This document shows positions 31,520-59,163 of a DNA stretch of 64,000 nt, one piece after another. Numbering within the stretch: the stretch's first letter is position 1; each line of letters starts with the position of its first letter. The notes beneath the pieces are model-generated. The model saw only the letters and a program-made list of their open reading frames with translations, was not told where the DNA came from and ran no database searches. The translations under genes were made by a program, and so were the position numbers. Source of the stretch: Mobula hypostoma (Eukaryota); assembly GCF_963921235.1 (NCBI RefSeq), contig NW_026948113.1:310001-374000 (forward strand), written 5' to 3'.

Positions 31520-31660
31520 TAGTTTCTATTTCTCAAACTGCAGGCGTCAAGACTGCCTGGTAACTGGTGATCAGACTTCCTTAAGCTTCTAATTGGCTGC
31601 CTGTATAGGAAAAGCTTAGTTTTTTTTAAACAGGCTTAGCACCGAGTACCCGGAAATGTA
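31520..31660 (+). promoter_or_regulatory. MHC class I proximal promoter: ISRE + X1/X2/Y module
   Basis: AGTTTCTATTTC (31521-32) fits the ISRE consensus AGTTTCNNTTTC. GCGTCA CRE half-site 31544-49; X1-like CCTGGTAACTGGTG 31556-69; X2-like TGATCA; Y box ATTGG 31592-96; ETS-like CCGGAA 31650-55. All lie just upstream of the leader ATG. Confidence 0.8.
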
Positions 31661-31751
31661 GCCGTAGAGTTGTGTGGATAAATCTGTCGGTTTTCATTTT
31701 ATTTTTTATATAATTTTATTCTGTGTTCCGGCCGAGCATTAAGTTTGGGGA

Positions 31752-31803
31752 ATGTTGCTGATACTCTGTGCCCTGTGTCTTTCCATTCGTCCGGTTTTCC
31801 CAG
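31752..31803 (+). CDS. MHC class I exon 1, signal peptide [17 protein letters not shown]
   Basis: ATG about 155 nt after the Y box; hydrophobic 17-aa leader; strong donor CAG|GTAAGT in phase 1, which completes GAG (E) with exon 2. Confidence 0.85.
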
Positions 31804-34800
31804 GTAAGTAGTGAATTCATCAACCCAGCCTCCACTGTCGTCCCGGGAGACACACTTCGTTGATAATTTTAGACTATGATTAGGGTTTGAAAGGGGTGAT
31901 ATTTAATCCTTGCTCGATAAAGGACTCCAGTGAAGGATTCCTGTGTAACTTCCCTGACTAACAATAAGGCGCATAATTACAGAACCGGGGAGGTCGTAAA
32001 CGGGGAACAGACAACATTAAAATGATCCGTTTTAAATTGATTTCGGAACTACAGGAATAGGGGTGATCTGCACTCCTCCAGTATGGCTGAGCTCTACTGT
32101 CGTTGAGCCATGGCCCATCAGACATGCAGCGCACAGTGTGCTCTTTGTGCCCCCTGTTGCCAAGGATTGTCCCTCTCTCTACTCTTTCCCGGAAGGGTGG
32201 AATCCCCCCGCCCCTCTAACTCCACAACTTTATGGAACTCCGTGTTTGGATCACTCCAGTCGATTTGCCTCAGGGCAAAATCATTAAAAAAAAACTGTGG
32301 CTTGAAGGACTTGGGGGTGGTGCATCTGGTGGCATTGCTGTTTCGCTGCGCCGTCGGCCCAGGCTCAACACTGACCTCCAGTGTTTGTACAGTTTTTATT
32401 TTATCAGCCGAATCCACCCAAGTTGTTGATTCTGTCCCAGATCTAATGTCTCAACCCCCTGATAATTTTTCTGCTTCCTTTGAAGTTCTTCTCGTCTGCT
32501 GACCTCCGTCAGATGTTCAAAGTTCAAAGTAAAATTTATTACTGTATCAGAGTACGTACATGGCACCACATACAACCCGGAGATTCTTTTTCTACGGGCA
32601 TACAGAGCAAATCTATAAAACTGTAACTCTAAACGGGATCAATGAACAACAAACTCTGCAAATACAAACATAAATAGATAGCAATAAATAACGAGCATGA
32701 AATAACAAGTTTAAGAATCCTTAAAGTGAGATCATCTGTTGTGGGAACAGCAGAGATAGAATGAGTGTAGTTATCCCCTTTTGTTCAAGAGTCTGATGAT
32801 TGAGGGGTAATAATGGTAGTAACTGTTCTGGAACTGGGTGGTGTCAGTCCTGAGGCATTTATACCTTCTACCTGATGGCAGCAGCTAGAAAAGAGCACGG
32901 CCTGGGTGGTGAGGATGATGTTGATAGAAGCAGCTTTTGTATGGCAATGTTTCATGATTGAGTGGGTTTTACTTTCAATGTAAAGGACCAAATCCACCTT
33001 TCGTAGATTTTCTGCTGAGAGGCATTGATGTTCCCACACCAGGCCATAATGCAGCCAGTCAGCACAATTTCCACCACACATCTATAGAAGTTTGCCAAGG
33101 TTTTTGATGACATGTTGAATCTTCGCAGACTCCTGAGGAAGTGCTTTCTTCGCAATAGTGATGGTTCCAGGACAGGTCCCCTGATATAGTGATTCACAGG
33201 AATTTAAAGTTACTGACCATCTTCACCTCTGGTCCTCCATGATTGCTGGCTCGTGGACCTCTGGTTTCCCTCTCCTGAAGTCCACAATCAGTGCCTTGGT
33301 ACTGTTGACATTGAGTGAGAGGTTGTTGTTATTATACCACTCAGCCAAATTTTCAATCTCCCTCCTTCATCACCAGCTTTGATACAGCCCACAATAGTGG
33401 TATCATCAGCAAACTTGTATATGGTATTGGAGCTATACCAAGATACAGTGGGAAACTTTGTTTTGTACGTTATCATTGTAGATAATTTCAAAACATAAGT
33501 ACATCAAAGTAGAACAAAGAGAAGAGGAATAAAATAACCTCCAGATTATAGTATTGCATTTTCAGAGAATAAGGTGCAAGTGCCATAACAAGGTAGGCTG
33601 TAAGGTTGATGGTTCAAATTTATTATACTACAGGTCTATTCAAGAGCTTTATGACAGCTGGACCAAAGCAGTCCTTAAAGCAGCTGGTTCCTGTTTTCAA
33701 GTTTTGGATCCTCTCCCAGTAGGAGTGGGGCGAACCAAAAATGACTTGGGTGCAAAGGGTTTGTTGTCTTCTTTCCTGAGGTAGGGGGAAATGTAGACAG
33801 AGTGTGTACTCAGCTCCCTGCAATTTAGAACATAGAACATTACGGGAGTAGATCCTGCGGCCTGCAATGTTGTGTGACATAATTAAATTGGCAATTAAAT
33901 GCCTTACTAAATTCATCCCTTCTGCCTTGCACATCTCTTTTGAATTTACCCTCACTCCCATCTTAGATGTATGCCCTCTAGTATTAGATGTTTTAACAGT
34001 AAAGATACTGGGTGCTTTCTGTATCTATGCCCCTCATAATTTTATCAGAATCAGGTTTAATATCACGGGCATATGTCATGAAATTTGTTGTTTTGCGGCA
34101 GCAATACATTGCAATACATAATAAAAGAACTAAAAATTACAATAGGAAGTATATAAATATAAAATAAAGTAGTGGAAGAAGTTAGGGAAGAATGACTGTG
34201 GTAGTGTTTGTGGGCTCATTGTCCATTCAGAAATCTGATGGCAGAGGAGAAGAAGCTGTTCTGGAAACACTGGGTGTGTGCCTTCAGGCTGCTGTACCTC
34301 ATCCTTGATGGTAGCCATGAGAAGAGGGCATGTGATGGGATAACGATGGATGCCGCCTTCTCGAGTCATCACTTTTTGAAGGTATTCTGGATACAGGGGA
34401 GGCTAGTGACCACAATGGAGCTGGCTGAGTTTACAACTTCCTGCAGCTTTTATCGATCCTGCGCAGTGGAGCCGCCGTACCAGATGATGAGGCAACAGGT
34501 TAGAATGCTCTCCATGGTACATCTGTAGAAATTTGTGAGTGTCTTTGTTGACATACCAATGCCATCATTAAACACGCCCATCACCCATGGCATGTCCTCT
34601 TCTCATTGTACAGAAGCCTGAAGGCACACACTCAATGATTGAGGAACAGCTTCTTCCCCTCTGTCATCCAATTTCTGAATGGATATTGAGCTCATGAACA
34701 CTATCTCACCACTTTTTTGTTTCTATTTTTGCACTACTTATTTAATATAACTATATACTGTATATATAAATTTGTGTTGTAGTCTGCAGCAAAGTTAACC

Positions 34801-37800
34801 AATTTCATGACACATGCCAGCAGTGTTAAACCTGATTTTGATTCTGATTCTCCCCAATCACCCAGTGAAATATAACCACTGTTGTGCCTTTGTAATTGCA
34901 TCAATATTTTAGGCATAGGATAGATCCTCAAAGATGTTGACATTCAGGAACTTGAAACTGCTCGTCCCTTCCACTTCTAATCCCTCATCGAGAAATCGTG
35001 TTTGTTCCCTCAATTTCCCCTCCAGAAGTTCACAGTTAGTTCCTTGGTCTTATTAGCCTCGAGTGCAAGTTTGTTACTGTGACACCACTCTACCGGCTGA
35101 TCTGTCTCACTCCTATACACCTCCTCGTCACCAGCTGAAATTCTTCCAACAATATTTGTGTTGTCAGCATATTTATAGATGGGTTTGAGCTGTGCCTCAG
35201 CACACAATCATGGGTGAGAAGATGTTACTTCTGATCCTCACAGGAACTCAAGGATACAGATGCAGAAGGAGGTACAGAGGCCCAGGTTTTGGAACTTGTT
35301 GGTTAGAACTGATTGTGTTGAATACTGAGCTGTAGTCAAGTCCGAGCAGAGAGCCAGTGAGATTGCATCACTGTGGACATAGTGCAACAGGTCCAGGTCC
35401 TTGCAAAGGCAGGAGTTGATTCTGGCCATGACCAATCTCTCAAAGCACTTTATCACAGTAGATTTGAGTGCCACTGGCTGATAGCTTTTGGGGCAGCTCA
35501 CCCTGCTGTTCTTGAGCACTGGTATGATTGTCACCGTTTTGAAGCCAGTGTGAACCTCTGACTGCAGTAATGAGAGATTGAAAATGTCCTTGAACACTCC
35601 CATCAATTGGTTGGCACAAGTTTTCAGAACTCTACCAGGTACACTACCAGGTCCTGATGCCTTGTGAGAGTTCACCCTCTTGAAATATGGTCTAACACCG
35701 ATCTCCAAGACAGGGATCACAGGGTCATCAGGTGCTGCAGGGACCCACACAGGTGTTGTTTTATTCTTCCACTCAAAGCATGAATAAAAGCATTGAGCTC
35801 ATCTGGGAGTGAAATTCACAGCCATACATGATATTAGATTCCGCTTTTTTAGGAAGTAATGGTCTGCAAGCCCTACCAGATTCCATCTCCAACTCCATCT
35901 CTAACCACAATGGAAACTGGGGTTTTTTTTGCCCTTAAAATAGTCTTCCATAAGTCATACCTGGACATTTTTTTTATAGTTATGGACACACCACAGCCAC
36001 TGCAACTCCAGAGAATAAAACAGCATAAGTTTGACCAACCTCTCCATACAACAGATGCCCTCTGATACAGGCAGCAGCTCGGTGAACGTCTACTGCACTC
36101 TCTCTAAAGCTTTCTCATCCTTCTTGTAATGGGGCAGCCAGGACCGGATGAAATATTCCAAATAACCAGAGTTTTATAAAGCTGCAACATAACTTTCTGA
36201 CTCTTGACCTCAGAAATTCCACTAATGAAAGCAAGCATGAATATACTTTATTTACCAACATATCAACCTGTGTTGCCCCTTTCTGGGAGCTATAGACATG
36301 GACCCCAACTCCCTCCGTACATCAATACTGCTAAGAGTCTTGCCATTAATAGTGTAATGACTCTTGTGGTCTTCGGCAGAGTGGTTACAATCTGTGATCA
36401 CACACAAAATGCTGAAGGAACTCAGCAGGCCAGGCCGCGTCTATGGAAAAGAATACAGTCAATGTTTTGGGCTGAGACCCTTCAGCAGGACTGGAGTGAA
36501 AAAGCTGAGGATAGGGTTTAAAAAGTGGAGGGAGGGGAGAGAGAAACACAAGGTGATAGGTGAAAGTATAGAGCTGGGAATTTGATGGTGAAAGAAATAC
36601 GGGGCTGGAGGAGGTGGAAGTAGGATAGATGAGGACAGAAGGCCATGGAAGAAACAAAAGGTGGCAGGGGGTGGGGGGAGGAGCACCAGAGGGAGGTAAC
36701 AGGTGGGCAAGCAGATAAGGTGAGAGATGGAAAAGAGAAAGGGGATGGGGAATGGTGAAGGCGGGGCAGTACTGGAAGTTCGAGAAATCGATGTTTATGC
36801 CATCAGGTTGGAGGCCATGCAGATGGAATATAAGGTGTTGTTCCTCCAACCTAAGTGTGGCCTCATCATGAATTATGGGAATGGGAATGGGAAGTGGAAT
36901 GAAAATGGGTGGCCACTGGGAGATCCTGCTTTCTGTGCTGCACGGAGCATAGGTACTCACTGAAGCGGTCTCCCAATCTACGTCGGGTCACCAATATACA
37001 GAATTTCTCGACCTTCCAGTAATGCCCCCCCTTCCCCATCCCCCATCCCCTTTTCCCTCCCTCACTTTACCTCCTTGCCCACCCAGCGCCTCACTCTGGA
37101 TCTCCTCCCCTTTTTTGTTTTCCTGTTGCTCACCATCTCTTTCACCAATTAACTTCCCAGATCTTTACTCTTCAGTTTTCACCTATCATCTTGTGTTTTC
37201 CTCCCTCCCCCCCGCCCACCTTTTAAATCTACTCCTCAGCTTTTTCTCGCCAGTCCAGCTGAAGGGTCTCGGGCCAAAACTTTGACTGTACTCGTTTCCA
37301 TAGATGCTGCCTGGCCTGCTGAGTTGCTCCAGCATTTTGTGTGTGTTGCTCAGATTTCCAGCATCTGCAGATTTTCTCTTGTTTGTGTCTGAATAGGATG
37401 CAACTTTATAATAGCGCAATGATTCAGCAAGGAGAACAGTACAACTATGAAGTGGAGCACTGCTCTGCTTGCTGAATCATTGTGCTGCTCTTGTGTTCAT
37501 GGTATGAAGCTGTGGGAAATGGCTGATTGCATCAGTAAAGAATCACCTATGACTCTATAATCTGTGGGGGAATTTCTTCACTCAGAGCGTGCTGTGGGTA
37601 TGGAACAAGTTGACAGCAGAAGGTATATATGCAATTTTGATTGTAGCATTAAAGAGAAACTTTGATTGGTACTGTATATCAATGAGAGGTATAGATGGTT
37701 ATGGTCAGGGTGCTGTTAGATGGTCCTAGGCAAAAGACCAGGTTGGCATATACTGGATGGGCCAAGTGGCCTGTTTCTGTGCTGTAGTGCTGTATGACTC

Positions 37801-38862
37801 TAAACCATCTCCCTTAACAGCTTCCGGAATTATATAGCACAGAAATTGCCTTCAGTTCACCATATACATGTTGACTATTGAGTACCTTTGCATATAACTC
37901 CATTTACTAGCTTTTCATCTACAGCTTCTGTGCCTTAGTGCTTTAAATGCTCATCCAGATGCTTCAACGTTGTGAGAGTCTCTGATCCACCACCCTCTCA
38001 GGCTGTTCGTTCCAGAATCCAACCACCCTCTGGATAAAAATTGTGTTCCCCAAATCCAGTCCTACCTTTTCCTTATACCTCAGCCCTTTGGTTTCCTACA
38101 GTCTGTTTTATTTGTGTACCAGTTTTGTATCAGGTCTCCCCCGGCCTCGCTGCTGCTCGGACAATGAATCCAGTCAGATTACACACGTCAGGAGTGCTAA
38201 CGTGTACTCTTCTCATTGCTGGATGTCAAAGCAGCCTGTTATCCACCACCCTGAACATTCATTCCTTACTTTACGAGTGGATGGTAGCTGCAGTTTGCAC
38301 CATCTATGAAATCCATCACAGTTCCTCACCAAAAACTTGTGACCACCACCAGGAGGGTCAAAAGCTTAATTTGCATGGGAACACTACTCCCTGCAGGTTC
38401 CCCACACCATCCAGAGTTGGAAATATATTGCCACTCCTGCATGTTCATTGGACTTTAACTCCTAGCATACAGTACCTCACTCCAATGGCTTATTGGTAGA
38501 ACTTTCACCAGAAGGACTCCAGCAGATCGAAGAAGATGGTTCATCCTCACCTTCAACGGGGCAGTAGTGAAAGGCCAATAAATAATGCCTCTCCAGCAGA
38601 TGAGTAAAAGAAAATGTTCTCAGGGCCAAGGTGGATGCAGAGGCATTAAAGTGCTTTCCACTTTCCGTACACCCCACTTTATTCACATTGAGATGCACAT
38701 TACAGAAACAGTCTGACCATCAAGCATTCATCTACACTAGTCCAAGATCCAAAACTCAGTCAGATAGATGCCTGGTGGTCAGCCCACATTTTCCCACATT
38801 CCTGTCCAGGCAGTCTCAGGAAGGATGTGCAAACTCCACACATACACACACACACACACACA

Positions 38863-38909
<47 letters not shown>

Positions 38910-41900: not shown

Positions 41901-44900
41901 TAGTAGACTCAGACACTAGGACAATGTCTGGTCGCAGGGTGGTGGCTGCGATATGGTTGGGGAACTTCAGCTGCCCTTCGAGGTCCACCAACAGCTGCCA
42001 GTCCCTTGCAGAGGTCAGAATGCCTGCAGATGTTCTTTTGGCAGGTATTGGCTGATCCCCAGCTCTGACAAAGGCAATGGTCTGCTTGGAGGGTCGGGAC
42101 CTCTTCGCCCACTCAACTCCTGTGCTGACGGCTTCAGCGATGGTCTTCAGGAACTGATCATGCCACCACCTGTATCGTCCCTCACAAAGTGCCCTTGCAC
42201 AGCCGCTGAGGATGTGCTCCAGGGTTCCTCGCTTGGAGCACAGTGGGCACGCAGATGACTCTGCCTTGCCCCATGTGTGCAGGTTTGATGGGCTTGGAAG
42301 CACATCGTACACTGCCTGGATGAGAAATTGGATGCAGTGTGGTTCGGCTTTCCAAAGATCAGCCCAGGTCACTTTCCTCTCAACCGCATTCTCCCGTCTT
42401 GTCCAAGCTCCCTGTTGCTTCATTCCCACCGCCTTGCAGGCTCTCATCTCCTCCACTAAATAATACTGTGAAAACTAGATGTAGTCTTTGACAGTTAGTC
42501 CGTAGGTTATGGAATTGGTTCAGTGTTGAGGTAGTCTGATGGTTGAAGTGTAATAACTTCCTGAACCTCACCTTCTGGGTGAAAACATTTCCCTCAATCC
42601 CCTCTCAACTTCCTCTCTCCTTAAACCTACGCTGTCTACTTCAGATGTCTTTGTTATGGGGAAAAGGTTCTCATTATCTTCTCTATGTCTCTCATAATTT
42701 GACACACCTCTTTTGGATCCCTCCTCAACCTACTCTGCCTCGAGGAAAACAAACACAGTCTCTTCAGTCTTTCCTCATAAACCGAATATGCCATATTCTT
42801 TGTGCCCCTCCAGTGTGGTCACATGTATCCTGTAGTGCAATAATCAGAACTGTACGTGTTTCCCTTCCATCTGTCTGTTTTAGTGATTTTCTTCAAACAC
42901 TAAATTGAATATGTTCATTTTTTGAGCTTTGCACATCACTGATGACTAGCAGGGCAGGAGGTGAGGAAGGAGAATCGCCATGATATGTGACCTCATTATG
43001 AAGTTGCGGTTGTTTTGTATTTGGCAGAGACACACAAACTGCAATATTTTTACACCTCGATGACCGGAAATGTGGATTTTCCTGAGTTTGTACACGTTGG
43101 ACTTTTGGATGATGTCCAGATAACCTACTTTGACAACAGTATTATGGAGGACGTTTCAAGACAGCCGTGGATGGAGAGAGAACTGAATGGTGACTACTGG
43201 ACGAAGGAGACCCAGAGGCTAATCAATCGGCACAAGCTGTCCATGGCCAACCTCCAGATCGCAATTCAACGAACCAACAGAAGCATGACAGGTGCGTGCA
43301 TCATTATGCTTGTAAAGTGAATGGGCTTCACACTGTATGCAGACCCACATTGTTTTTATAGGAGCCATGTGTGAGGCTGATTGAAAATGTTCAGTCACTT
43401 CAGTTGAGATAGTAAATTGGATGTGACATTGGCTTCATTAGAGAAGCCAGAGGGTTGTAGTAGATGTTTGCCTCTCTGACTGGAGGCCTGTGACTAGAGG
43501 TGTGCTGCAAGGGTCAGTGTTCATCCATTGATTTTCATCTTTATTAATGATCTGGATGATGATGTGTTAAACTGGATCAGCAAATTTAAAGATGACCCCC
43601 AAGATTGGGAGCATAATGGACAGTGAGAAAGCCTATCAAAGCTTATGCAGGATTTGGACCAGCCGTGGTGCGGGTGGAGGGGTGGGAGGAAAGGCTGAAA
43701 AGTGACAGATAAATTTAATGTAGACAAATGCAAGGTGTTGCACTTTGAGAGAACTAGGGTAGGACATACAGTACACAGTGTAGGGCACTGATAAGTGCAG
43801 TAGTACAGAGGGATTGTTAATACGTATCCATAATTCCCTGAACGTGGTGTTACAGGTAGAAAAGGTCATAAAGAGAGATTTTGGCATATTAGATTTCATA
43901 AATCCAAGTATTGGGAACAGGAGTGGGATGTTATTTGAAGTTGTATAGGAAATTGGTGAGGTCAAATTTGGGGTGTTGTGTGCAGTTCTGGTCACCTCCT
44001 GTACCTACAAGAAAGATATTGATAATGTTGAAAGAGTGCAGAGAAAACTTATAAGGATGTTGTCGGGACTTGAGGACTTAAGTCATAAGAAACTGTTGAG
44101 CAGGTTAGGACTTTATTCCCTGGACCATAGGAGTATGAGCAGAGATTTGATAGAAATATACAAAATTATGAGTATTATAGATTGGGTACATATAAGCAGT
44201 GTTCTTCCATTGAGGTCGGGTGAGACTAGAACTAGATATCATAGGCTAAAGGTGAGAGATGAAGTACTCAGGTGAACATGGGTGGCTGCGAATGTGGAAT
44301 GATCAGGTTTGTTTTCAACATCAGAGAAGTTTAGATGAACACCTGGATGGCATGGTTATGGAGGGCTATGGTGCAGGCGTAGGTGCAGGTCGATGCGGCT
44401 ATGCAGAACAATAGTTTGGCATAGACTAGGTGGGCCAAAGGGTGTTTTTCTGTGCTGTAGTGTTCAATGGGAGCGGACCACTATATTGGGAAAGCAACCC
44501 AATGGTGTATTGGAGAGAGGACAGTGACATGAAAATGGCGGGAAATGGTAAGTGGACAGGCACAATGGGTGTGCAATCCAGGCTACGTAATGGTGAGCAG
44601 ATGGTAATATTGGGAATGTAATGAATAGGAATGATGTCTGACTCAGAACGAGGAATGGCTGTGACTGCAAAGTTAGGACTAATGGGAGGGCAGTGATGAA
44701 TTGACGTCTGTGTTGGAGGTAATGAGTGGATAATGATCAGTGATAGCTATGTATATGTGTAATGAGTGTGTAATGGTGAGCGGATCGGTGTGTAGAACTG
44801 TAATGAGTATGTAATAGTGAGTGGATGGCTGTGTGGGAGTGTATAGGTGGGTAATGATGAGTGATTGCAATCTGGGTGTTTAAAGGGTGGGTAGAAGTGA

Positions 44901-47900
44901 GTAGATGGCTGTATTCAAGTGTAATGGGTGGGTAATGGCTGGGTGGGACTGTTGTGAGTGGATGCCATATGAAAATATAATAATGAGTGGATGGTTGTAT
45001 GAGAGTGAAAAGTGTGGGTAATGGTGAGTGATGGCCATGTGAGGATGTAATACGTTGGTAATAATGTGTATATGGCCATATGGCAATGTCATGGTGTAAC
45101 AGTGAGTGGATGGCTGTGGGAGTGTAATGGTGAGTAGATGGCAGAGTGGGAGTGTAATGGTGAGTAGATGGCTGTGTGGGAGGGTAATGAGTGTGCAATA
45201 AGTGGTTATTGGACATTGAGTGTGTAATGGGGAACAATGGTGAATGGAGATCCATGCCCCTGGGTTCCACATTATCGTACGAGATGCAGGTGTGACCTGA
45301 GGCCAGGTTTTGATTTCTTCTCCTTCTCCAGGGCTGAACTACCTGCAGTACACATCAAGCTGCCAGCTGAATGACGACCAAACGGTAAGCGGGGTCCGCC
45401 AGTTCGCCTTCAACGGCCAAGACCTAATCAGCTTTGACCTTGAGCATGCCACCTGGGTCACCACCTCTCCCATCGCGATCACCACGAAGGACAAGTGGAA
45501 CAGTGACAACAGCAACAATCTCTACAAAAAGCATTACACAGAGAACATCTGTGCCGAGTGGCTCAAGAAATATCTTGAGTACGGAGCCCAGACACTGTCT
45601 CGCAAAGGTAGGTCAGGCTAAACATCTGCCATTCAACATCTGATCAGTTCCCTGCCAGCCATGTCCTCCTGCACGTTTCACGTTGCCCCCACTAATTCCA
45701 TGGTGTTAGTTTGAACTGGAACCAATAGCACGAGTCATGAGGAAATGCAGCAGGACTTTGTTTTTTAGGATCAGAATTAGGATCGGGTTCATTATCGCTG
45801 TTATACACTAGGTGACCACTTAATTAGTGTAAGGAAAGAGTTAAAAGTGATTCCACCCAAACCACACCATGTGGCACCAACAATTCCAGTCACAGTCACT
45901 AAGATCATTTCTTTCCCGTTACGATGTTTTGTCTGAACAACTGAACCTCTTGACCATGTCTGCATGCTTTTGCTGTCACATGATTGGCTAATTAGATCTT
46001 TGCATTAATGAGCAGGTGTACAAGTGTACCTAATAATGTAGCCACTGTGTGTAATTTGTTGTTTTGTTACAGCAGTGCAGTGGGACACATAAAAAGTTAT
46101 TATACATGAGGAATGAACTGAATAAACAGAGCAAAAAGACAATTAGTGAGATGTTCATTGGTTCATGAACTTTTCAGCAGTCTGATGGCAGAGGAGATGA
46201 ACCTGTTCTTAAAACAGGAAGGTCTGCAGGTATGATTGAAATATGGAACCCTTAGACACCTACTTCCACCTATCCTGCTGGTGAATGTATGATCTCTGGA
46301 AAATAAAATGAAGACCTCACAGCAAAATTGCGGTACCAGAGGGACATCAGGGTCTTCTGTGTACTTTGCTTCATGGAAATATGGTTCATCCTACCTGTGG
46401 GCTTCACTATTCACCACAAGGACAGAATAGCTGAGACTTTTCATTGTGCTGCACAAACATGGCAGTCTTGTCTCAAACCTGCTCACCCAACATGGAACAT
46501 CTAGTGGTCAAGTTTTGTACGTTTTAGTTATGAGGGTGTTTTCTGCTGTCATCCTGGTAGTGGTACACATTCAGCCTCTGGTTGTGTCACCGTCTGATAT
46601 GGTGGAGCCATTGCACAGGATCAGCAAATCGAGCCAGCTGCAGCAGGGGCACTAGCCTGCCCAGCATCAAGGACATCTTCAAAGCACAATGCCTCAAAAA
46701 GCTGGCATCTATCAAAAAGGACCCCATCACCCAGGACATGCCCTCTTCTCATTGCTACTATCGTGGAGGCGGTACAGCAGCCTGAAGACACACACTTAAA
46801 TGTTTCAGGAACAGATTCTTCCCCTCTGCCATCAGATTTCTGAATGGACAATGACCCATGTACACTCTCTTATTATATTTCTTCCCTTTTTTTGGCTCTC
46901 TTTTTGACCACTTATTTAATCTAACTTTTTATATATATTTATTATTGTAATTTATAGTTTGTGTTTACTATATATTGCATTGTACTGCTGCCACAATGAC
47001 AAATTCCACAACATATATGCCAGTGATATAAAACCTGATTCTGAATGCACTGTCAGACCTGATTGGAGTTGTGGAGATCCACGGCTCTAGAAACAAGGGA
47101 GGGTCTATGACACGTCATCAGTGTTCATTTATTCTGTGAGTAAATTACAAGAGAGTTGTGGAGGCTTTGGAGAGGGTGCAGAACAGGTTCACCAGGACAC
47201 TGTCGGATTGGAGTACAAGAGCTATAAGAAGGGTTTGGATAAACTAGGGCTGTTTTCTCTGGATTATCAAAGGCTGAAGGGAGACCTGACAGAAGTTTCT
47301 AAAATTACCACAGACATCTTATCCCCGGGCATGCCTCTCTGTTGCCATGTGCCTGCTGCACGGAAGCTTCTCAATGCACCGGCGCATACATGTCTTTGTC
47401 TACATGACAGTAAACTCAACTTCAACTTTGACTTTGAGGTATTTAAGGTGAGAGGGGTAAAGGGCAAGATGGTAGTAGATGCCTGGAACGGGCTGCCAGT
47501 GGTGGAAGCAGATAAAGGTCTGGTGTTTAAAAGGCCGTGAGAGAAATGAATATGCAGGGAACGTCGGGATGTGGATCGTATATTCAGTGCAGATATTGTT
47601 GGCCAAAGGACCTGATCCCGTACTGTACTGTTCTACAAGTATGATTCTGAATACATGCTGCTTGGAAAGTATTAGGTGGTGTAGTTCACAAAATAAGATC
47701 TATCTTCAATCATTACAAGTGCTTTCCTATTGGCCAACTTTGATGTAAGTTATTATTAAGCATGCAATAAATTATCCATAAATCCCTACTGCAAAGAAGC
47801 AGGCCATTCAGCCCAACATGCCTGTGCTGGCTCTATGAGTGAGATATCCAATTAGTTACGCTCTTTTTCCACGGACTGCAATTTTTTTGTTACTTGGTGG

Positions 47901-50900
47901 CGTAAATCTTGGTCTAACAATCAAGTTGAGCAACAGTGAGATCTGGTGAGTGGTCACCATTGGCAGATCTTATGAGATCCATTTGTAACTGTATTGGTTG
48001 ATGTCTCCTTTCCAACTACAGCACTGTTTGTATCCTTTCCATCGCTTTGTTGATGATCAAGAGTGGACTAATGGAGTAGTAACTGGTTGGCTTTGTTTGG
48101 CCCTGCTTTGGAGAACAGGAGGCTCCTGGGAATGATCCATTTTGTTTGATGGCTCTGGGTATGTTCTCACTGGAGTTTCGAAGAATGAGGGGAAATCTCA
48201 TTGAAACCTGTCTAATATTGAAAGGCCCAGATAGAGAGGACGTGGAAAGATGTTTCCTATAGTGGGCAAGTCCAGGGCCAGAGGGCACAGACTTAGAATA
48301 CAAGGATGCACCTCCAGATTAGAAGAAGGATGAGGAGGAACTTCTTTTGGGGGAATTCATTGCCGCAAACAGATGTATAGCCAAGACATTCAGTATACTT
48401 AAAGTGCTGCTGGTTCTTGATTAGTAAGGGTTTCAAAGGTTATAGCGAGACAGTAAGAGAATGGGGGTAATAAATCAGCCATGATGGAATGGTGGAGCGG
48501 ACTCAATAGGCTAATTCTGCTAATATGTCTTATGGTCTTACAGTCGTATTGTTGGGTAGATACCAGTGATGTTAGCTGGACTGGAACAACTTGGCCAAGG
48601 ACACGACAAGTTCTGGAGACGCAGGTCTTCAGTACTGCTGTTGAAGTGTCATCCGGGCACACAGCATTTGCTATATCGTCATATTAGTTAATGGTTTATG
48701 TCTGGTTATAGCACCATTTCACAATATATTGTAAGATCATGCACATTACAACAAGTGGTGCTGATGGTTGCTGAACCTATCTGTAAATATTTGGCAGCTT
48801 TTGCTTAGGCAGTGACTGTGTTGCCTGTAATCTAGCTAGTCATTGGTGAAAACCTGACTGTGGGACCAGGCCTCATAACCTTGGCTGGAGTATACTTGAA
48901 CAGGTACACCTACTTTTTAATACAAACATCTAATCAGCCAATCATGTGGCAGGAACTCAATACATAAAAGCATAGAGACATGGTCAAAACACTTAGTTGT
49001 TGTTCAGACCAAATATCAGAATGCGAAATAAATGTGATCTAAGTAACTTTGACCATGGAATGATTGTTGGTGCCAGATGAGGTGCTCATCTTCTAGGATA
49101 TTCATGCACAACAGTCTCTAGAATTTACTGAGAATCATGCAAAAAAACAAAAAAAACTAATTCCAGTGAGAAGCAGTTCTGTGGGCAAACACACCTCGTT
49201 AATAAGAGAGGAGAATGGCCCAACTGGTTAAAGCTGACAAGAAGGTGTCAGTAACTCAAATAACTGCATGTTACGACTTAGCGTGCAGAACAGCATCCTG
49301 AATGCACAGCACATCAAAGTTAGAAATGGACGAACTGCAGCAGCAGAAGACCCCACTGGGTTCCACTCCTATGGACACTTTATTAGGAACACTTCTTTAC
49401 CTGTTAAATTGGCCATTGAGTATAGAAAAGCTATTTTATTCTCCCCATGTTCCTATCAATTATCTCCATCCTTCACCACAACCCTGATTCTATCGCTCGT
49501 GTAATTACTGAGGGCAATTCACAGTGGATAATATAGATGACTTTCCCACCAGTATGCATGACTTTGGGATGTAGGAGAAAACCAGAGCAACCAGGAAAAT
49601 TCCCCAAACCCACACGGTCACAGTGAGCACATGCAAACTCCATAAACACAGTGTTGGAGGTCAGGAGCAAACCAGTTCTCAGCGGCTCTTGTCAGCTCTG
49701 TTCCTGTCTGTCTCTCTCGCTCCCTCTCAATCACTCGCTCTCTATTGCTTTCTCTCTCCCTCTCAATTGCTTGCTCACACTCTGTATCACTTGCGTTCTC
49801 TCTCTTTTGTGGTCTCTTTCTCTCTCTACCACTCTTTAATGCTCTCCCTGTCTTTCCAATGCTCTCTATCAATCTCTCACTCTCAATCACTCCCTTTCTT
49901 GATCACCTCGCCCCCTCTCACTCGATTGCTTTCTTGCCCTCTCTTGATTGCTCCCTATCATGCCCACTCCCTCTCTGGCATTGTTTCCCCCTCCCCCTCC
50001 CTCTCCCACTCTCCCGCACGTGCACACTCCCACGCACACACACTCACACACTCCCACACTCCCACACTCATACTCCTACACTCCCACACTCTCACACTCC
50101 CACGCTCCCACACTCTCACACTCACGCTCCACACTCTCACACTCACACTCACTCAGCACTTACAGTACATCGGGCCAAAGGACCTGTCTCCAAGCTGTGT
50201 ATCTCTAACACTAACTGTCTTCTCCCACAGCTGTCCCAGATGTGATGGTCTACTCCAAGATGACTCCAGATGGGGAAGGCCTCATTCTCCATTGCCTGAC
50301 CACTGGCTTTTACCCACAGGCCATCACTGTGACCTGGCTCAGGGATGGCCAACCTCTTCCCCCACATGCAAACTCTAGCATTTTACCCAACCACAACAAC
50401 ACCTACCAGATAAAGGTGTCCTTGCTGTTAGAGCCTACGGAGAGACGGCAACATGTCTGTCATGTGCAGCACAGCAGCAGGCCGGAAGGAGTGGATTTCA
50501 CCTGGGGTAAGACATGGATGAGTAATGAGTAAATCATGGGGTGAAAGGGTGGAGAAGGTATTGTGGGGTGTGTGGGTGTAAGATATCAGTATTTGTATTG
50601 GTTTATCATTGTCATGTAGAATCATAGAGCATTACAGGGCAGAAGCAGGCCATTCAGCCCTGCTTGTCCATGCCAGCCTACTCTTCTGCCTAGTCCTATC
50701 TACCTGCACCCCCCAGATCATGGCCTTCCATATTCATCCATCCATATACCTATCTAAATTTCTCTCACATGTTACAATTGAGCGTCCATCTAACACTTCC
50801 ACTCGCAGCTCGTTCCACATTCGCCCCATCCTCAGAGTGAAGAAGTTCCCCCTCTGATTCCCAGTACACGTACCAAAATATAGTGAAAACCACTCAGTTT

Positions 50901-53900: not shown

Positions 53901-56900
53901 ATAATTATTAAATTACAGCCAGATATATCTGATAAAATCAAAAATGAATGGGAAAGGGAGCTTCAACTTTCCCTACCTATAGAGAAATTGGAAAAAAATT
54001 TTCAATTAGTTAGTACTTTTTCTATATGTGCTAAACATACATTAATACAATTTAAAGTAGTACTCAGAGCTCATATGTCCAAAGATAAACTAGCTCATTT
54101 TTATTCCCACAGAGCCCTACTTGTGATAGATGTCACTCTGAAGTGGCTACTTTAACTCATATGTTTTGGTCCTGTCCTCTTTTGGAAAAATATTGGAAAG
54201 ACATTTTTGATATTATTTCAACAGTTCTAAGGTTCGATTTAAAACCCCATCCTATTACGGCAATCTTTGGATTGCCAATGGTAGAACATAGATCTTTGTC
54301 TTCTTCAGCCTGTCGAATGATAGCTTTTGTTACTTTAATGGTGAGAAAATATATTTTGTTGAACTGGAAGGAAACTAACCCTCCAACTACATTCCAATGG
54401 TTTTCTCAAACCATATTAAGTTTAAATTTAGAAAAAATTAGAAGTGATATTTTTGACCCTTCGGTTAAATTTGAAGAAACTTGGAAACCTTTTATGCAAC
54501 ATTTTCATATGAGGTAATCTGACCTTTCCGAATCTTTTTTCTAAACTTAAATTATATGAGAGGAGCGGAGTTGAAGACATTATTGAACATGTCTGATACA
54601 AGCTGTTGGTCTAGCCCTGTTTTGCTTTTTTTGGGTTATTTTTCTCTTTTTCTTTTGGGTTTTTTTTTGTTTATATATATTTTTTTCTTTTTATTTCTTT
54701 TTTAATGATTAATCTCATTATGAGTTTGAAAGTCTTTTATATCTATGATACTTAAAATTCATTTTATATATGCTGATGAACATTATCCTAATCTCTTTGT
54801 ACCAACTTTGTTATTGAGTTTATAATTTTGAAAAATTAATGAAAAGATTTAAAAAGAAAGAAAAGAGACTGGGTAGTAAGGTCAGGGGTCAGGTATGTGT
54901 GGGCAGGTATGGAGATCGGGATGGTAGGTTGCTTCTCCTTATGACCTGTTCGAAGATGTCCCTGAACTGCTAGATAACAGGCTCGCAAGGGAAGGCACAG
55001 TGGTACTGATGATGGTGCTGCTTCCCAACAGCACCAGATGTATCACAGTCTATCATAGACAAAGCCCTTTCCACCATTGAGCACATCTACAAGGAGAGCT
55101 TCCACAAGAAAGCAGAATCTATCATCAAGGACCCCCCCTCCACCCCCCTCCTCCCTTCAGGTCATGTTCTCTTCTCACTGCTACCATTGGGGAGGAGGTA
55201 TAGGAGCTATTGGTCCCAAACCAACAGGAACAGGATCAGTTATTCCCTACACCATCAGGCTATTCAACCAGCATGGTCAACTTCAATCACCTGAACTCTG
55301 AACTATTTCTACAACCTATGGTCTCACTTCCAAGGACTGTAGAGCTCATGTTCTCGTTACTCTTTACTTGCTTTTTTTATTTTTACCGTTGCCTTCTTTT
55401 GCACATTGGCTGTTCGCCACTCTTTGTGTGTAGCTTTTCATTGACTGTACTGTATTTCTATGTTTTACTGTGAATGCCTGTAGGAAATTGTATCTCAATG
55501 TAGTATATGGTGTCTCTAGGTAGAATATGTATACTCTGATAATAAATTTACTTTGGACTTTCACTCAAACCTGTCCTCACAGTCTGTGCAGAGAGGCACT
55601 GGCCAGAATGTCCTTCCTTTGACCTGATATGGAATGGGCTTAATCCACGCTGCAATTATTCTACTATTTGTAAGGAATAGGGGGAGCCTTGTGTAAGGCA
55701 TGGGAAAAGTGCAGGTGGACTGATGCTCACTGCACAGTGATCTGGTAACAATTCTCTCCTTGCTTCATTAGAGCCAGACAGTGGAGTAAATATATGGCTG
55801 ATTATCCTCTTCCTGCTGGTAGTTATCAGTGCTGTGGGAGCTGTTTGCATCTGGCTGAAGCACAGAAAAGGACTGATAAAATGCATCTGCTCAAGCAGAG
55901 GTAAGACTGAGTGGTGTACTTCAGTTTTCATGCCAAGCTCATGAATGGGTCACTCACAGTTGCATGGTTTGATTCACCCGAAGCACCTTTTGGCCTATGT
56001 GCTGAGATGTCAGCAGTGAAATTGTAGGCTGCAGAACTCAACAGAGATCAGGCAGAGATGATGATCAGTAGTCTATCACGAGGGACAGGCCATTCATTCT
56101 CCAAATCCCGACTAACCATCAAGCACTCTCTTATTTCCTTGTCTAGCAGCACATCCTCATTTTCTTTACAAAAATAAATTTATTTCAAGAACCACAATGC
56201 TACAACTCTGCAACAAAACACTAAGCAACAACAATTGATGAAGACCAATTAAATTAAAATATTCATATCCTCGTCTAGGATGCAATGTATGCCCTGTGGG
56301 GACATATGTTTCTGGACTAACTATATGGTGCCCGTGGGCATTGCATCTTATTTCTGCATGGATACCTGGGTGTGAATGTACCCCTGGTGGATTGCCAGGC
56401 AGTCAGCCCGGATGGAGCCCTCATCTACCTGCCTTCAGGATCCTGTGATATTTAACTTTGCCACCCCAAGGAACCAGTTAACCAGGCATCCTCTTCCTGT
56501 CCCATGTCCCCCTGCACTAGCTGACCAAATACAAAGAGGATGGAGCTTAAATCCAACCAGAAGGCGAGGAGAAGCTCCCTCAGATATGTGAATTGGGACT
56601 GCAGCCACACACAGTCTGTGTGCATGTGGACATTGTGCCTTCCAGCCCAAAGAAGCAACAAGTGGCTGGGAGATCTGTGTACAGTCTTATAAACTTATTG
56701 CAAGAAAGTGTTGTGCAGCATTCCTCCTTCTCCCCATCCGGGGGCCCTGTGCTGGCTCTTGCTCTCCATCCTGTCTGACGGCCCGGTGCTCCCTCTGGCC
56801 CCTGTCCAGTGGCCCAGCGTTCCCTCTCGTCCCTGTCCAGTGGCCTGGTGCTGGCTCTCACCCCTGTCCAACGGCCCAGCCTCCCTTATCCTCTGACCAT

Positions 56901-58677
56901 CTGCTCTGGATATGATTAGTCCTCAAGGATGCCTTCTTGTAAATTGTGACCAAAGGCATTTCACGAACCATACCGCATTGATGTGACATTGTTGTTGAGC
57001 TACCTTTGGTCACTTTTAAATGAAAATGTTTTAAGAAGTTCAAAAGAAGCCTCTGAAATGTTTTGTTGGTGGTATTTCTCAACAGCTAATGTGTGCATCT
57101 TTCTTTGTTTAGAATCCACGGGGACGATATCTAAATCAGGTCAGTATCAAAATGCCAATATGCTGTACTCTGTAGGGTATTGCCAGTGTGGGTGTGGCAT
57201 CCCATTGTATATGATTCAAGATTCTATCCCGTTACTTTTCCTGCCAGCTCTATACCACAGATGGAATAACAGGAAACTTTATAGTCTTTGCATTAAGATC
57301 ATCCCCTACTCCAATGTCTGAAATACCACACTCAAGGGAGATATTGCTAATTTCATTCTCAAATCCCACAGGAACAAATGGTGGCTCAAAAGAGGGGAGC
57401 CATGGAGTCATAAGTAGCTAGCCATCTGGACACAAGCTGGGGTCTGATCATCCCTGGCTGGGTCACCTGGAGGAGGGTGTATGATGTTGAAAGACCCGAC
57501 ACACCCGATGATTCCAGGAACATCACTAAAGTTGTGTCCAGAGGCATCAGCAGATGTATGTACACAGCTTATGAACACCGCGGCAAATAACATGGTTTTA
57601 ATGCACAGGGACCAAGGATAAGCATGAAGTGTTTAGAATCACAAGGTAATTCAGCATGGATATAGGGCCTTTGTCACATTGTGTCCATGCAACCATGGTG
57701 CCCACTCAACTAGCTCCAATTTCATGCCATCAGCCTAATCCCCCCAAGCCCTACACCTCTTGTGGGACAGTGGCCCTGTGTAGACTTTGTGTGTATGCGT
57801 AACAACAGCATGTTATTTAGGATTATTTCTTACCATCAAGAGTTTTTATTATAAACTTTGTCCAGAATCTTCACTCATCTTGTGACTTTCTGTTATAGAT
57901 ACTGGTAGCGAACAATCAACGCAAATGATACCAACACAAGAAGCAGACTGCAGTGGTGAGAAAGGGAAAATGCTTGTGTAGTGAAGCGTCTGATCAGAGA
58001 CTCCACTTAAATTGCGCTGGTTGACTCTCAGTGTGTAATCAGGAAGAGGAATGAATTACAGAACACAAAGATTAATTCTGAATTAGATTTACTATTTGCT
58101 CACCTTTTATGTTCAAAGGTCAGAAGTGTCCAGCTGTGATCATAGTCTCAAAACATGGAAGCCCATCAAGTGCCCATTTACACAACAACCTCGATATTCT
58201 CCCACATTCCCATCAACTACCCCTGGATTCCACCACTCAATTTATTTACCCTTCCCACACCCCTGCAACTTCCCCTCAAATTCTACAATTTACCTATGCA
58301 CTGGAGACAATTTATTGTGGCCAATAAACCTACAAGCCCAGGTATCTTCAAGATGTGGAGGAAAACTGGAGCACCCAGTGGAAACCCAGCCAGTCACAGG
58401 AAGACTATGCAACCTGCACACAGACTGTGCCAAGTGACTCCATCAACCTGATGTCTCAGGATATAGAGATCTGACCGACCAAATGACCCTGTGCTATAAT
58501 GGCCCTGGGTTCATTGCTCTGACACTTTATCCAGAGTCCACTTCCAGTAATCCAGGAACATAGAAAACTTACAGCACAATACAGGCCCTTCGGCCCACAA
58601 TGCTGTGCCAGACACGTCCTTACCTTGGTCATTCCCGACTCCGTGACTCCTCCACAGTTTTGACTGCCATTGGATGA
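31752..58677 (+). CDS. MHC class I heavy (alpha) chain gene, 7 coding exons, about 357 aa; peptide-binding type, UDA-like nonclassical candidate
   Basis: Exons of 52+264+276+276+129+57+20 nt = 1074 nt join in one open frame through phase-1 GT-AG introns. Order is leader, alpha1, alpha2 (C101-C164), alpha3 C1-set Ig, TM, cytoplasmic. The last exon is the least certain part. Confidence 0.93.
32520..35800 (-). mobile_element. Cluster of Rex1/Babar LINE fragments in MHC intron 1
   Basis: ORFs 35238..35750 ([20 protein letters not shown]...YQPVALKS), 33288..33491 ([11 protein letters not shown]) and 32952..33197 ([21 protein letters not shown]). Confidence 0.78.
36390..37390. mobile_element. PLE with inverted pseudo-LTR arrangement (minus copy 36390-36990, plus copy 37000-37390)
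   Basis: Minus ORF 36385..36960 [31 protein letters not shown] is the GIY-YIG C-terminus. The acacacaaaatgctg...aactcagcaggccagg ends face each other. Confidence 0.75.
38837..38906. repeat. (CA)n microsatellite in MHC intron 1
   Basis: Direct read; useful as a linked marker. Confidence 0.95.
41449..42457 (-). mobile_element. Non-LTR retrotransposon with restriction-like endonuclease (HERO/NeSL-type), 3' fragment
   Basis: CCHC knuckle [22 protein letters not shown] motif, and after a frameshift RKLSKY...PVEVGCRGF...ASRWLWLKR; 3' UTR to about 41449. Confidence 0.8.
43028..43291 (+). CDS. MHC class I exon 2, alpha1 domain
   Basis: ttggcag|AG acceptor, G|gtgcgt donor, 264 nt. [11 protein letters not shown]...GLLDD...RQPWM...DYW...QRTNRS carries Y7, Y59, R84 and the N86 glycan sequon. 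Confidence 0.95.
43420..44480 (+). mobile_element. CR1 LINE fragment in MHC intron 2
   Basis: gtgactagaggtgtgctgcaagggtcagtg (degenerate GVPQGSVL), [17 protein letters not shown]...LYSLDHRSM. Confidence 0.8.
44690..45250. repeat. Degenerate GT-rich minisatellite (about 30-bp unit gtaatggtgagtagatggctgtgtgggagt) just upstream of the alpha2 exon
   Basis: Near-perfect units at about 45125-45185, decayed copies leftwards; it generates the H/T/P-rich antisense ORFs. Confidence 0.8.
45332..45607 (+). CDS. MHC class I exon 3, alpha2 domain
   Basis: tccttctccag| acceptor, G|gtaggt donor, canonical 276 nt. C101, W133, T143, K146, W147, Y159, C164, W167 and Y171 are present. Confidence 0.96.
45804..46053. 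mobile_element. Tc1-derived MITE
   Basis: Imperfect TIRs tacactaggtgaccacttaattag and ctaataatgtagccactgtgtgta, with TA ends. Confidence 0.55.
48890..49420 (+). mobile_element. Tc1/mariner remnant
   Basis: atgtgatctaagtaactttgaccatggaatgattgttggtgccaga and acaacagtctctagaatttac; related to 30250-30605. Confidence 0.6.
49690..50155. repeat. (CT)-rich then (CACACT)-rich low-complexity tract upstream of the alpha3 acceptor
   Basis: Direct read. Confidence 0.85.
50231..50506 (+). CDS. MHC class I exon 4, alpha3 C1-set Ig domain
   Basis: tcttctcccacag| acceptor, G|gtaaga donor, 276 nt. Motifs [27 protein letters not shown]. Confidence 0.95.
51545..52213 (-). mobile_element. DNA transposon remnant, transposase C-terminus (CMC/Chapaev-like)
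   Basis: [10 protein letters not shown]...[29 protein letters not shown]. That it is a transposase is likely; the superfamily assignment is from recall only. Confidence 0.5.
52561..54864 (+). mobile_element. L1-clade LINE, 5'-truncated, with 13-bp TSD, sense orientation in MHC intron 4
   Basis: [25 protein letters not shown]-terminal HMFWSC motif and A-rich tail; TSD gagactgggtagt at 52548-60 and 54865-77; several stops and frameshifts. Confidence 0.92.
55772..55900 (+). CDS. MHC class I exon 5, connecting peptide, transmembrane segment and start of tail
   Basis: ctccttgcttcattag| acceptor, G|gtaaga donor, 129 nt, phase 1-1. [43 protein letters not shown] is a hydrophobic helix followed by a basic stop-transfer patch. 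Confidence 0.9.
56165..57000 (-). mobile_element. Possible Tx1-type LINE remnant (3' end at about 56165-56330)
   Basis: Minus strand ...[15 protein letters not shown] followed by aataaatttatttttg resembles Tx1 ORF2 termini; the rest is unassigned. Confidence 0.4.
57380..57568 (+). mobile_element. 3' tail of the same HERO-type element, opposite orientation to 41449-41640, in MHC intron 5
   Basis: tggctcaaaagaggggagccatggagtcataagtagctagcc...tgtacacagct is the reverse complement of the 41449-41640 copy with few mismatches. Confidence 0.85.
57899..57955 (+). CDS. MHC class I exon 6, cytoplasmic tail
   Basis: actttctgttatag| acceptor, G|gtgaga donor, 57 nt, phase 1-1, open: [19 protein letters not shown]. 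Confidence 0.7.
58658..58677 (+). CDS. Probable MHC class I terminal exon (coding VLTAIG*), with 3' UTR running to about 58985
   Basis: gactcctccacag| acceptor in the right phase, followed by about 285 nt of unique sequence and AATAAA. Alternatives: acceptor before 58945 (DL*) or read-through of the exon 6 donor (GEKGKMLV*). Confidence 0.45.
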
Positions 58678-58960
58678 AAGAAATCATGTGACTTCACTTG
58701 CTTGGGTTTAGCATAGGAAGTATGGCAGTAATGTGGGCAAGTCAGCTTTTTTAGGATCATCCGGACCAAGCTCAACTAGATCAAACTGATTAGCATCGTC
58801 TCTTAAAAAAGAACATTGTTATGTCAGGTTTGAGCTGCAACAGACCTGTAAATCTAAATGCTAATTTTATGGTGCATTGTCTTGGTTACCATTATGGTCC
58901 ATGCCTTTGTAATATTGTATGTGCTGTAAATATTTTTACCACAGATTTGTGACAAATACC

Positions 58961-58966
58961 AATAAA
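58961..58966 (+). terminator. Polyadenylation signal AATAAA of the MHC class I gene
   Basis: Canonical hexamer downstream of both candidate terminal acceptors and before repeats resume at about 59030. Confidence 0.55.
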
Positions 58967-59163
58967 ACCTGTGAATGAAAGAGCTCAGACGTGACTGCTC
59001 TCCTGCACCATTCCTTTCCTTCAGGTGCTCCCTTGCTACTCCAGCTGTTTGTTTTGTCCATGAACCTGCGGCTTTTGTGTGGGAAAAGCAGTGAAATAAA
59101 ATCAGAAAATTTTGTAAACACCCAGTAGGCCAGCTAGTGTCTGTGGAGAGAGAAACACCATAA

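Follow-up and report, generated by a model that had tools for sequence, protein, structure and literature searches.

The MHC class I gene found in the 64-kb stretch of DNA analysed here (the window), from the lesser devil ray Mobula hypostoma, is real, intact and transcribed, and we put at roughly 85% the probability that this 27-kb, seven-exon, transposon-filled locus is the ortholog of UDA, a nonclassical class I lineage of cartilaginous fish, encoding a type I membrane heavy chain of 368 amino acids. The gene is already present in the public RefSeq annotation and the UDA lineage was already described in 2020, so that the first-pass annotation, made from the letters alone, was correct in calling the gene a UDA-like nonclassical candidate, and the call is not new. 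What is gained for the devil-ray gene is an exon map, a 3′ UTR and a poly(A) site backed by transcript contigs, together with a numerical account of the conservation of the ray groove pockets relative to those of classical UAA.

Seven plus-strand exons scattered among transposons do join into an intact open reading frame, as had been claimed, and the spliced product is 100% identical to RefSeq XP_062894944.1 (P0157) of Mobula hypostoma; its 368 residues replace the length of about 357 given at first. Only three of the exons (alpha1, alpha2 and alpha3) are long enough to show up among the listed open reading frames of at least 60 amino acids, in agreement with the earlier reading. All internal exon boundaries are of the AG...GT type, exons 1 to 5 each end in phase 1, and the introns, up to 11.2 kb long, contain reverse-transcriptase open reading frames. 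The parts of the gene are as follows.

31520..31713, plus strand: candidate promoter (motif scan)
31520-31533, plus strand: ISRE-like AGTTTCTATTTC in the probable promoter (motif scan)
within 31520..31713, plus strand: X-like CCTGGTAAC in the probable promoter (motif scan)
31592-31596, plus strand: Y box ATTGG in the probable promoter (motif scan)
31707, plus strand: TATATA in the probable promoter (motif scan)
31752..31803, plus strand: exon 1, ATG and 17-aa leader, followed by the opening base of codon 18, with GTAAGT as donor
43028..43291, plus strand: exon 2, alpha1, with Y7, Y59, R84 and the N-glycosylation site NRS (Pfam MHC_I E 4.5e-15, PDB alignments)
45332..45607, plus strand: exon 3, alpha2, with the Cys pair, L123, T143, K146, W147, Y159 and Y171 (Pfam MHC_I E 6.8e-18, PDB alignments)
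50231..50506, plus strand: exon 4, alpha3, Ig C1-set (Pfam C1-set E 1.1e-15)
55772..55900, plus strand: exon 5, connecting piece, transmembrane (TM) helix and membrane-proximal Cys-rich stretch (hydrophobicity scan, translation)
57113..57139, plus strand: exon 6, 27-nt cytoplasmic exon (brute-force splice fit to XP_062894944.1, RNA joints)
57899..57981, plus strand: coding part of exon 7, Ser/Thr-rich cytoplasmic tail, stop TAG at 57979-57981 (splice fit, RNA joint)
57982..58982, plus strand: 3′ UTR of about 1 kb (continuous transcript contigs)
about 58525-58641, plus strand: repeat in the 3′ UTR
58961-58966, plus strand: AATAAA signal
near 58982, plus strand: poly(A) site (poly(A) loose end in run X3)

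The translation of exon 1 matches residues 1-17 of XP_062894944.1 at 100%, and its start, MLLIL, is common to shark orthologs. The product is identified as a class I chain by its alpha1-alpha2 MHC_I region and C1-set alpha3, its TM segment and two disulfide pairs, and an exon-per-domain plan with phase-1 boundaries. The span first assigned to the gene, 31752-58966, begins correctly at the ATG and ends at the last base of AATAAA, beyond the coding sequence, which stops at 57981. A 3′ coding exon ending at 58966 was considered and rejected: its acceptor-like CACAG (about 58957) lies in the continuously transcribed 3′ UTR.

The gene is transcribed, spliced and polyadenylated. Transcript contigs from four runs of two ray species cover exons 5-7 and the 3′ UTR, and the runs behave as RNA, with a poly(A) tail and joints of the GT..AG type. 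The joint of the TM exon with exon 6 (55900|57113) was seen in four runs and that of exon 6 with exon 7 (57139|57899) in runs X1, X3 and X4; in the same three runs the loose end before 55772 corresponds to window positions 50477-50505, 29 bases at the end of exon 4, providing the alpha3|TM joint. From 57897 the contigs continue unbroken to 58982/58989, with the poly(A) loose end after 58982 in X3, the one run in which the tail is visible. Full-length transcript contigs measure about 1740 nt and, judged from these sizes, the transcripts extend on the 5′ side of the ATG by 22-29 nt or more; the exon 1|2, 2|3 and 3|4 junctions are based on the RefSeq model, on homology and on the size of the transcript contigs. 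Word depth was 400-2700 in exons versus 3-6 in introns, in contigs that do not quantify expression, and a fixed difference, 57964 G>A, was found in the three runs of organism A, in contigs that cannot show heterozygosity. The very long, transposon-filled introns could suggest a silent or decaying copy, a reading that we consider virtually excluded by the open frame, the canonical form of every splice site, the spliced and polyadenylated contigs from two species and the strong residue conservation described below. Splice junctions had been named at first pass as the check for silence, and the three joints seen speak for a living gene.

The residues that hold the peptide termini in class I molecules, read from alignments to solved class I chains and from the family alignment, form the string YYRLTKWYY: Y7, Y59, R84, T143, K146, W147, Y159 and Y171 are kept and Leu occupies position 123, exactly as first listed. 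UDA reportedly keeps eight of nine of these residues, according to the 2020 work of Almeida and colleagues. The same string occurs in 10 of the 13 elasmobranch clade sequences, the nurse shark among them, and an eleventh, N-terminally cut, agrees at all eight anchor positions covered. As a signature of UDA, the eight-of-nine pattern thus stands for the devil ray, the nurse shark and most clade members, but it fails as a diagnostic mark on its own because some UAA carry Leu123 too: three members of the UAA clade, from Narcine, Chiloscyllium and Heptranchias, show the identical string. In cartilaginous fish, eight of nine anchors by itself cannot tell UDA from UAA.

The ectodomain is confidently predicted to adopt the class I fold, the AlphaFold model (pLDDT 93.9) giving its best TM-scores, 0.92-0.94, to peptide-loaded chicken BF2. 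This comparison bears on the name that RefSeq assigned automatically, 'MHC class I-related gene protein-like', which would make the product an MR1-like presenter of small metabolites. MR1 chains do match the alpha2 exon (E about 2e-16) and MR1 figures among the fold matches, but classical chains of carp and chicken outscore it, the TM-score to MR1 is 0.80-0.81, the peptide-termini anchors are all kept but one, and the position that in a by-eye alignment corresponds to the ligand-binding Lys43 of MR1 reads as an invariant Asp. To our knowledge MR1 is known from mammals only. An MR1-like function is therefore highly improbable on these points; the RefSeq name is misleading and UDA can replace it.

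In the phylogeny, calculated without UFA, labelled UEA and teleost Z reference sequences, the devil-ray protein falls inside a shark and ray clade with one gene per species (support 100/99), which includes nurse-shark QGX07421.1. The topology of the clade is species-like, rays are monophyletic (100/100), and chimaera (Callorhinchus) sequences form the sister group of the elasmobranch clade (100/99). The clade stands apart from classical UAA (97/99), in which P0176 gives a match to 6LUP of E 1e-132, as well as from Squalus UCA Q8HWI9 and from a multicopy shark clade that keeps 2-7 of the nine anchors. Protein database searches likewise gave one protein cluster per elasmobranch species. Such a tree had been suggested at first pass as a check, and in it the gene does not cluster with UAA.

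The name of the lineage is the less secure part of the assignment. The product name of QGX07421.1 is 'nonclassical MHC class I antigen', and we take this protein to be UDA from that name, from what the abstract of the 2020 paper reportedly states, from copy number and from synteny. UDA is described as single copy and as lying in one cluster with UEA and UFA (PMC10751288); since UEA and UBA are multicopy and UFA and UGA are CD1-like lipid binders (PMC10751288, PMC12562908), UDA remains as the single-copy peptide-type gene of the cluster. The name would be wrong if the gene were part of some nonclassical lineage that is not the published UDA, for example UEA or an unnamed single-copy lineage. 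Such a reading gains something from the literature, as no accessible text ties QGX07421.1 to 'UDA' (text searches of the accessible literature for QGX07421 and Gici-UDA gave no match) and in the review PMC12562908 it is 'UEA' beside which the 2020 paper is cited; lineage labels were also sought in the supplement of PMC10751288, where the genes are marked 'MHC-Ib' only, and lineage detail in the bamboo shark genome paper, where none was found. We nevertheless consider it improbable, given the multicopy state of UEA and UBA and a clade in which each species has a single gene that keeps peptide anchors. The cluster neighbour UFA (PMC10751288) and UGA, both CD1-like single-copy MHC-Ib molecules, are reported lipid binders (PMC12562908), whereas the devil-ray gene keeps the peptide anchors; the shark UGA crystal chain 9ch4 resembles the devil-ray model in fold (TM 0.89-0.90) but shares just 34% identity with it.

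Assignment of the gene to UDA is favoured by the groove itself, whose pockets are nearly frozen between sharks and rays when the sequences are compared. Across the 13 sequences of the UDA-type clade no variation occurs at 25 of 31 pocket positions, compared with 43 of the 149 other alpha1-alpha2 positions (odds ratio 10, p 1.7e-7), and four of the six variable pocket positions vary only in Mustelus. UAA behaves in reverse, with 3/31 pocket positions invariant against 49/149 of the others. Positions 152, 155 and 156 were omitted from the pocket set because their HLA-to-ray numbering is ambiguous. Between M. hypostoma and M. birostris 5 of 180 alpha1-alpha2 residues differ, none of them at a pocket position. 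The remaining peptide-binding residues of UDA are likewise said, in the same 2020 work by Almeida and colleagues, to be conserved across elasmobranchs. The groove has Asp at the position of HLA-45 and Arg at those of 66, 70 and 114, which might, speculatively, translate into charged anchor preferences.

The surroundings point in the same direction. Upstream of the gene lies a C2H2 zinc-finger open reading frame on the minus strand, and in the sawfish the order is BRD2, B2M, a ZFP2-like gene (minus), the orthologous 'Q10 alpha chain-like' gene (plus, flagged MHC-Ib) and further MHC-Ib genes, so that the window and the sawfish share the succession of a minus-strand zinc finger and a plus-strand class I gene. 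The devil-ray gene is thus in the MHC-Ib cluster and not beside TAP or PSMB (window, sawfish synteny, PMC10751288). This result, from the synteny comparison that the first-pass annotation had also proposed, bears out its placing of the lineage outside the core class I region. B2M and BRD2 are absent from the 64-kb window. No second class I exon was found within it either, the large open reading frames checked being transposon or zinc-finger sequence, and the claim of no neighbouring paralog holds inside the window only. Two candidates were discarded: a possible class I start at 61539-61571 ('SPGSHSLQFCF') lies inside a transposon-like stretch and has no class I protein match at E 1e-3, and a tblastn match at 4479-4682 corresponds to the retrotransposon-like tail of a chimeric database protein. 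The frame adjoining 61539-61571 reads, to our eye, like a retroelement endonuclease.

These data also allow the alternative of a classical, polymorphic UAA-type gene presenting diverse peptides to be weighed. Shark UAA (6LUP) shares with the devil-ray chain the class I fold (TM 0.89), the exon plan, the termini-binding residues and, in some members, Leu123, and the fold of the model is nearest to peptide-loaded classical molecules. It differs in sequence (about 34-38% identity), in belonging to a separate clade and in having pockets that vary between species. A tree that excludes the gene from UAA and places it firmly elsewhere, pockets frozen across species, the lack of any further class I exon in the window and a sawfish ortholog that sits in the Ib cluster, close to B2M and BRD2, make a classical identity very unlikely.

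For the UDA gene we propose the following role. The devil-ray heavy chain would pair with beta2-microglobulin, and its groove, in which the residues gripping both free ends of a peptide, N and C, are kept, would present a small range of peptides, fixed in evolution, and not a diverse, polymorphism-driven repertoire. Presentation could be to T or NK-type receptors, by analogy with HLA-E/Qa-1 or the teleost Z lineage. HLA-E and Qa-1 are oligomorphic mammalian peptide presenters, with a peptide-type groove and little variation; they may serve as a provisional model of a molecule whose ligands are fixed, their origin being independent of that of the devil-ray gene. The teleost Z lineage seems to follow the same evolutionary pattern, an analogy of behaviour only since Z is a bony-fish lineage. 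A more specific idea, suggested by groove conservation and still doubtful, is that the frozen UDA groove shows a single conserved peptide, or a handful of them, of self or pathogen origin, to an NK receptor or the receptor of an innate-like T cell. If true, UDA would be the oldest known counterpart of surveillance of the HLA-E/Qa-1 or teleost-Z type, and the Mobula gene, which seems strongly expressed, would be a handy source for refolding and ligand elution.

Compared with its nearest relatives the devil-ray gene is an ordinary ortholog. It shares 50% identity with nurse-shark UDA-type QGX07421.1 over 93% of the nurse-shark protein, and with elasmobranch UDA in general the single gene per species, the near-invariant pockets and the location in the MHC-Ib cluster and not in the class Ia core. 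Nothing sets it apart beyond two traits: Phe instead of Tyr at the HLA-116 position, seen in the Myliobatiform rays, and the length of the cytoplasmic tail, which is shorter in ray proteins than in shark UDA-type proteins. The TM segment and tail differ at 10 of about 80 residues between M. hypostoma and M. birostris.

The window gene is intact and expressed, and it codes for a class I heavy chain whose groove is of the peptide type and evolutionarily fixed. On the + strand, the ORF list contains three class I-like frames, 43015-43320, 45310-45621 and 50242-50532; the first two match Pfam MHC_I (alpha1, E 4.5e-15; alpha2, E 6.8e-18) and the third C1-set (alpha3, E 1.1e-15). The corresponding exons have AG and GT at their edges and are in phase 1, as is the hydrophobic exon at 55772-55900, while the leader begins with ATG and ends in G followed by GTAAGT. 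The alpha2 exon, used as a phmmer query against 1.84 billion representative proteins, gave relatives at 53-68% identity, and a second search, using one of these as query, retrieved P0157 (XP_062894944.1), the 368-aa Mobula hypostoma RefSeq protein named 'major histocompatibility complex class I-related gene protein-like'. The exons were then located by tblastn and brute-force splice fit to this protein.

Features of the window (exons by tblastn and brute-force splice fit to P0157)
9930-11153, - strand, C2H2 zinc-finger ORF of 407 aa, upstream of the class I gene in GC-rich DNA
31752-31803, + strand, exon 1, leader
43028-43291, + strand, exon 2, alpha1
45332-45607, + strand, exon 3, alpha2
50231-50506, + strand, exon 4, alpha3
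55772-55900, + strand, exon 5, connecting piece and transmembrane segment
57113-57139, + strand, exon 6, cytoplasmic
57899-57981, + strand, exon 7, cytoplasmic, with stop TAG

Since the spliced translation of the seven exons is exactly P0157, the gene is already annotated in RefSeq. The first-pass annotation had correctly proposed seven exons and a start at 31752, which is the ATG of exon 1. Its product of about 357 aa has to be corrected to 368 aa, and position 58966, taken there as the 3′ end, is the last base of an AATAAA signal, the stop lying in exon 7, which ends at 57981. The introns measure, in order, 11224, 2040, 4623, 5265, 1212 and 759 bases, and several contain reverse-transcriptase ORFs; a (CA)n/(TG)n microsatellite in intron 1 (38830-38900) appears in the ORF list as His-Thr repeats. 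A motif scan gave a candidate promoter at 31520-31713, 40-230 bp upstream of the ATG, with an ISRE-like motif (AGTTTCTATTTC), an X-like motif (CCTGGTAAC), a Y box (ATTGG, 31592) and TATATA (31707).

Pieces of the locus are present in eight sequencing runs, four of which were aligned to 55600-59100. Over this interval, the GT..AG joint from 55900 to 57113 was found in all four runs and that from 57139 to 57899 in three. The loose end of the contigs before 55772 corresponds to 50477-50505, the 3′ end of the alpha3 exon, so that the alpha3-transmembrane junction is also among those observed of the splice junctions that had been suggested as a check. In contigs of about 1740 nt, 890-897 nt precede the transmembrane exon, which is consistent with 868 coding nt and a short 5′ UTR. 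Coverage is unbroken through 57897-58982, with a poly(A) tail behind 58982 in one run, and word depth in organism A, one of the two devil-ray species behind the runs, is 400-2700 in exons versus 3-6 in introns. From these joints, coverage and tail, the gene is transcribed, spliced as annotated (joints seen from alpha3-transmembrane onward) and polyadenylated in both species. Organism B, the second species, differs at about 1-2% of sites; its C for A at 57980 changes the stop TAG to TCG followed by TGA. The product is thereby one residue longer, which matches P0269, the Mobula birostris protein of 369 aa. At 57964 all three organism A runs have A where the assembly has G, which would change Gly364 of the cytoplasmic tail to Arg; this is possibly an allele or a between-individual difference. 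Run X2 also holds an intron-retaining contig over 55874-57139 (depth 49, versus 1048 for the spliced form), probably unspliced precursor. In the 3′ UTR, word depth is 37,000-109,000 at 58525-58641 in each of the four runs, and the contigs are interrupted at this point; the stretch resembles a repeat within the UTR, highly expressed or high-copy.

Database searches returned a single close relative for each elasmobranch species (Mobula birostris, Hemitrygon, Hypanus, Pristis, Ginglymostoma, Chiloscyllium, Mustelus, Scyliorhinus, Heterodontus, Pristiophorus, Heptranchias, Hemiscyllium and Cetorhinus), beyond which identity falls to 44% or less. Quick and careful maximum-likelihood trees were concordant. 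They unite the window protein and these relatives in a single clade (100/99), with rays monophyletic inside it (100/100) and the Callorhinchus group as its sister (100/99). Distinct from it are the classical UAA clade (97/99), a group of multicopy shark sequences (100/99) that keep only 2-7 of the nine anchors, and Squalus Q8HWI9, which we take to be the UCA sequence. The nurse-shark member of the window gene's clade is GenBank QGX07421.1, a 'nonclassical MHC class I antigen'. UDA is reportedly a low-copy lineage that retains eight of the nine termini residues, shows conservation of its remaining peptide-binding residues among elasmobranchs, and is linked to the MHC yet separable from the UAA/TAP/LMP core; each of these features, polymorphism aside, is seen in the window gene. 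The gene's existence is confirmed, and its reading as a UDA-like nonclassical gene is supported by its placement with QGX07421.1, outside UAA. The gene model is already public and the lineage already published, UDA being described as single copy, in an MHC-Ib cluster shared with multicopy UEA and CD1-like UFA (PMC10751288).

Aligned with HMMER to class I structures from grass carp, nurse shark, cattle and chicken, the alpha1 and alpha2 exons confirmed that Y7, Y59, R84, T143, K146, W147, Y159 and Y171 are kept, with Leu at 123. The family alignment gives the same anchor string, YYRLTKWYY. As a UDA signature it holds less well, for it also occurs in three UAA-clade sequences: P0168 (Narcine), P0277 (Heptranchias) and P0176 (Chiloscyllium), the last matching 6LUP, a structure of nurse-shark UAA, at E 1e-132. 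Because of this, eight of nine alone does not mark a gene as nonclassical in cartilaginous fish, and with Leu123 in these classical-type sequences the teleost-derived nine-residue rule is looser there. P0015, the Mustelus asterias ortholog, alone deviates at four anchor or pocket positions (Ile59, Phe123, Ala146, Phe163), which may reflect relaxed constraint or a paralog.

The HLA-A2 pocket positions were transferred to ray numbering, omitting the ambiguous 152, 155 and 156, which left 31. Among the 13 sequences of the elasmobranch clade, 25/31 pocket positions are invariant versus 43/149 other alpha1-alpha2 positions (odds ratio 10, p 1.7e-7), and four of the six variable ones vary in the Mustelus copy only. 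The UAA clade goes in the opposite direction (3/31 versus 49/149, p 0.009). Between M. hypostoma and M. birostris, 5/180 alpha1-alpha2 residues differ, none in pockets, versus 10 of about 80 in the transmembrane segment and tail; judged from these sequences, conserved pockets with a variable tail are the reverse of a classical gene. The ectodomain model (pLDDT 93.9, pTM 0.81) has its top TM-scores, 0.92-0.94, with peptide-loaded chicken BF2, followed by shark UAA and, at 34% identity, shark UGA (both about 0.89-0.90); UFA and UGA are lipid binders (PMC12562908). MR1 scores 0.80-0.81, and the MR1-like identity in the automatic RefSeq name appears unsupported by the predicted fold. The heavy chain would pair with beta2m and present a restricted, conserved peptide set.

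No class I exon besides those of this gene was found in the 64-kb window, as the first-pass annotation had stated for paralogs. A weak class I match at 61.5 kb ('SPGSHSLQFCF') is explained by the transposon-like stretch 61380-62080, in which one frame resembles a retroelement endonuclease domain, and another, at 4.5 kb, falls on a tail of retrotransposon type. In the sawfish (Pristis), a 'ZFP2-like' gene on the minus strand lies between B2M and MHC-Ib genes: the series runs BRD2, B2M, ZFP2-like and then, on the plus strand, a 'Q10 alpha chain-like' gene flagged MHC-Ib, whose name is also that of the ortholog P0154, with further MHC-Ib genes beyond. The Mobula zinc-finger ORF matches it in position and strand, and the order zinc finger to class I gene appears to be conserved between the two rays.
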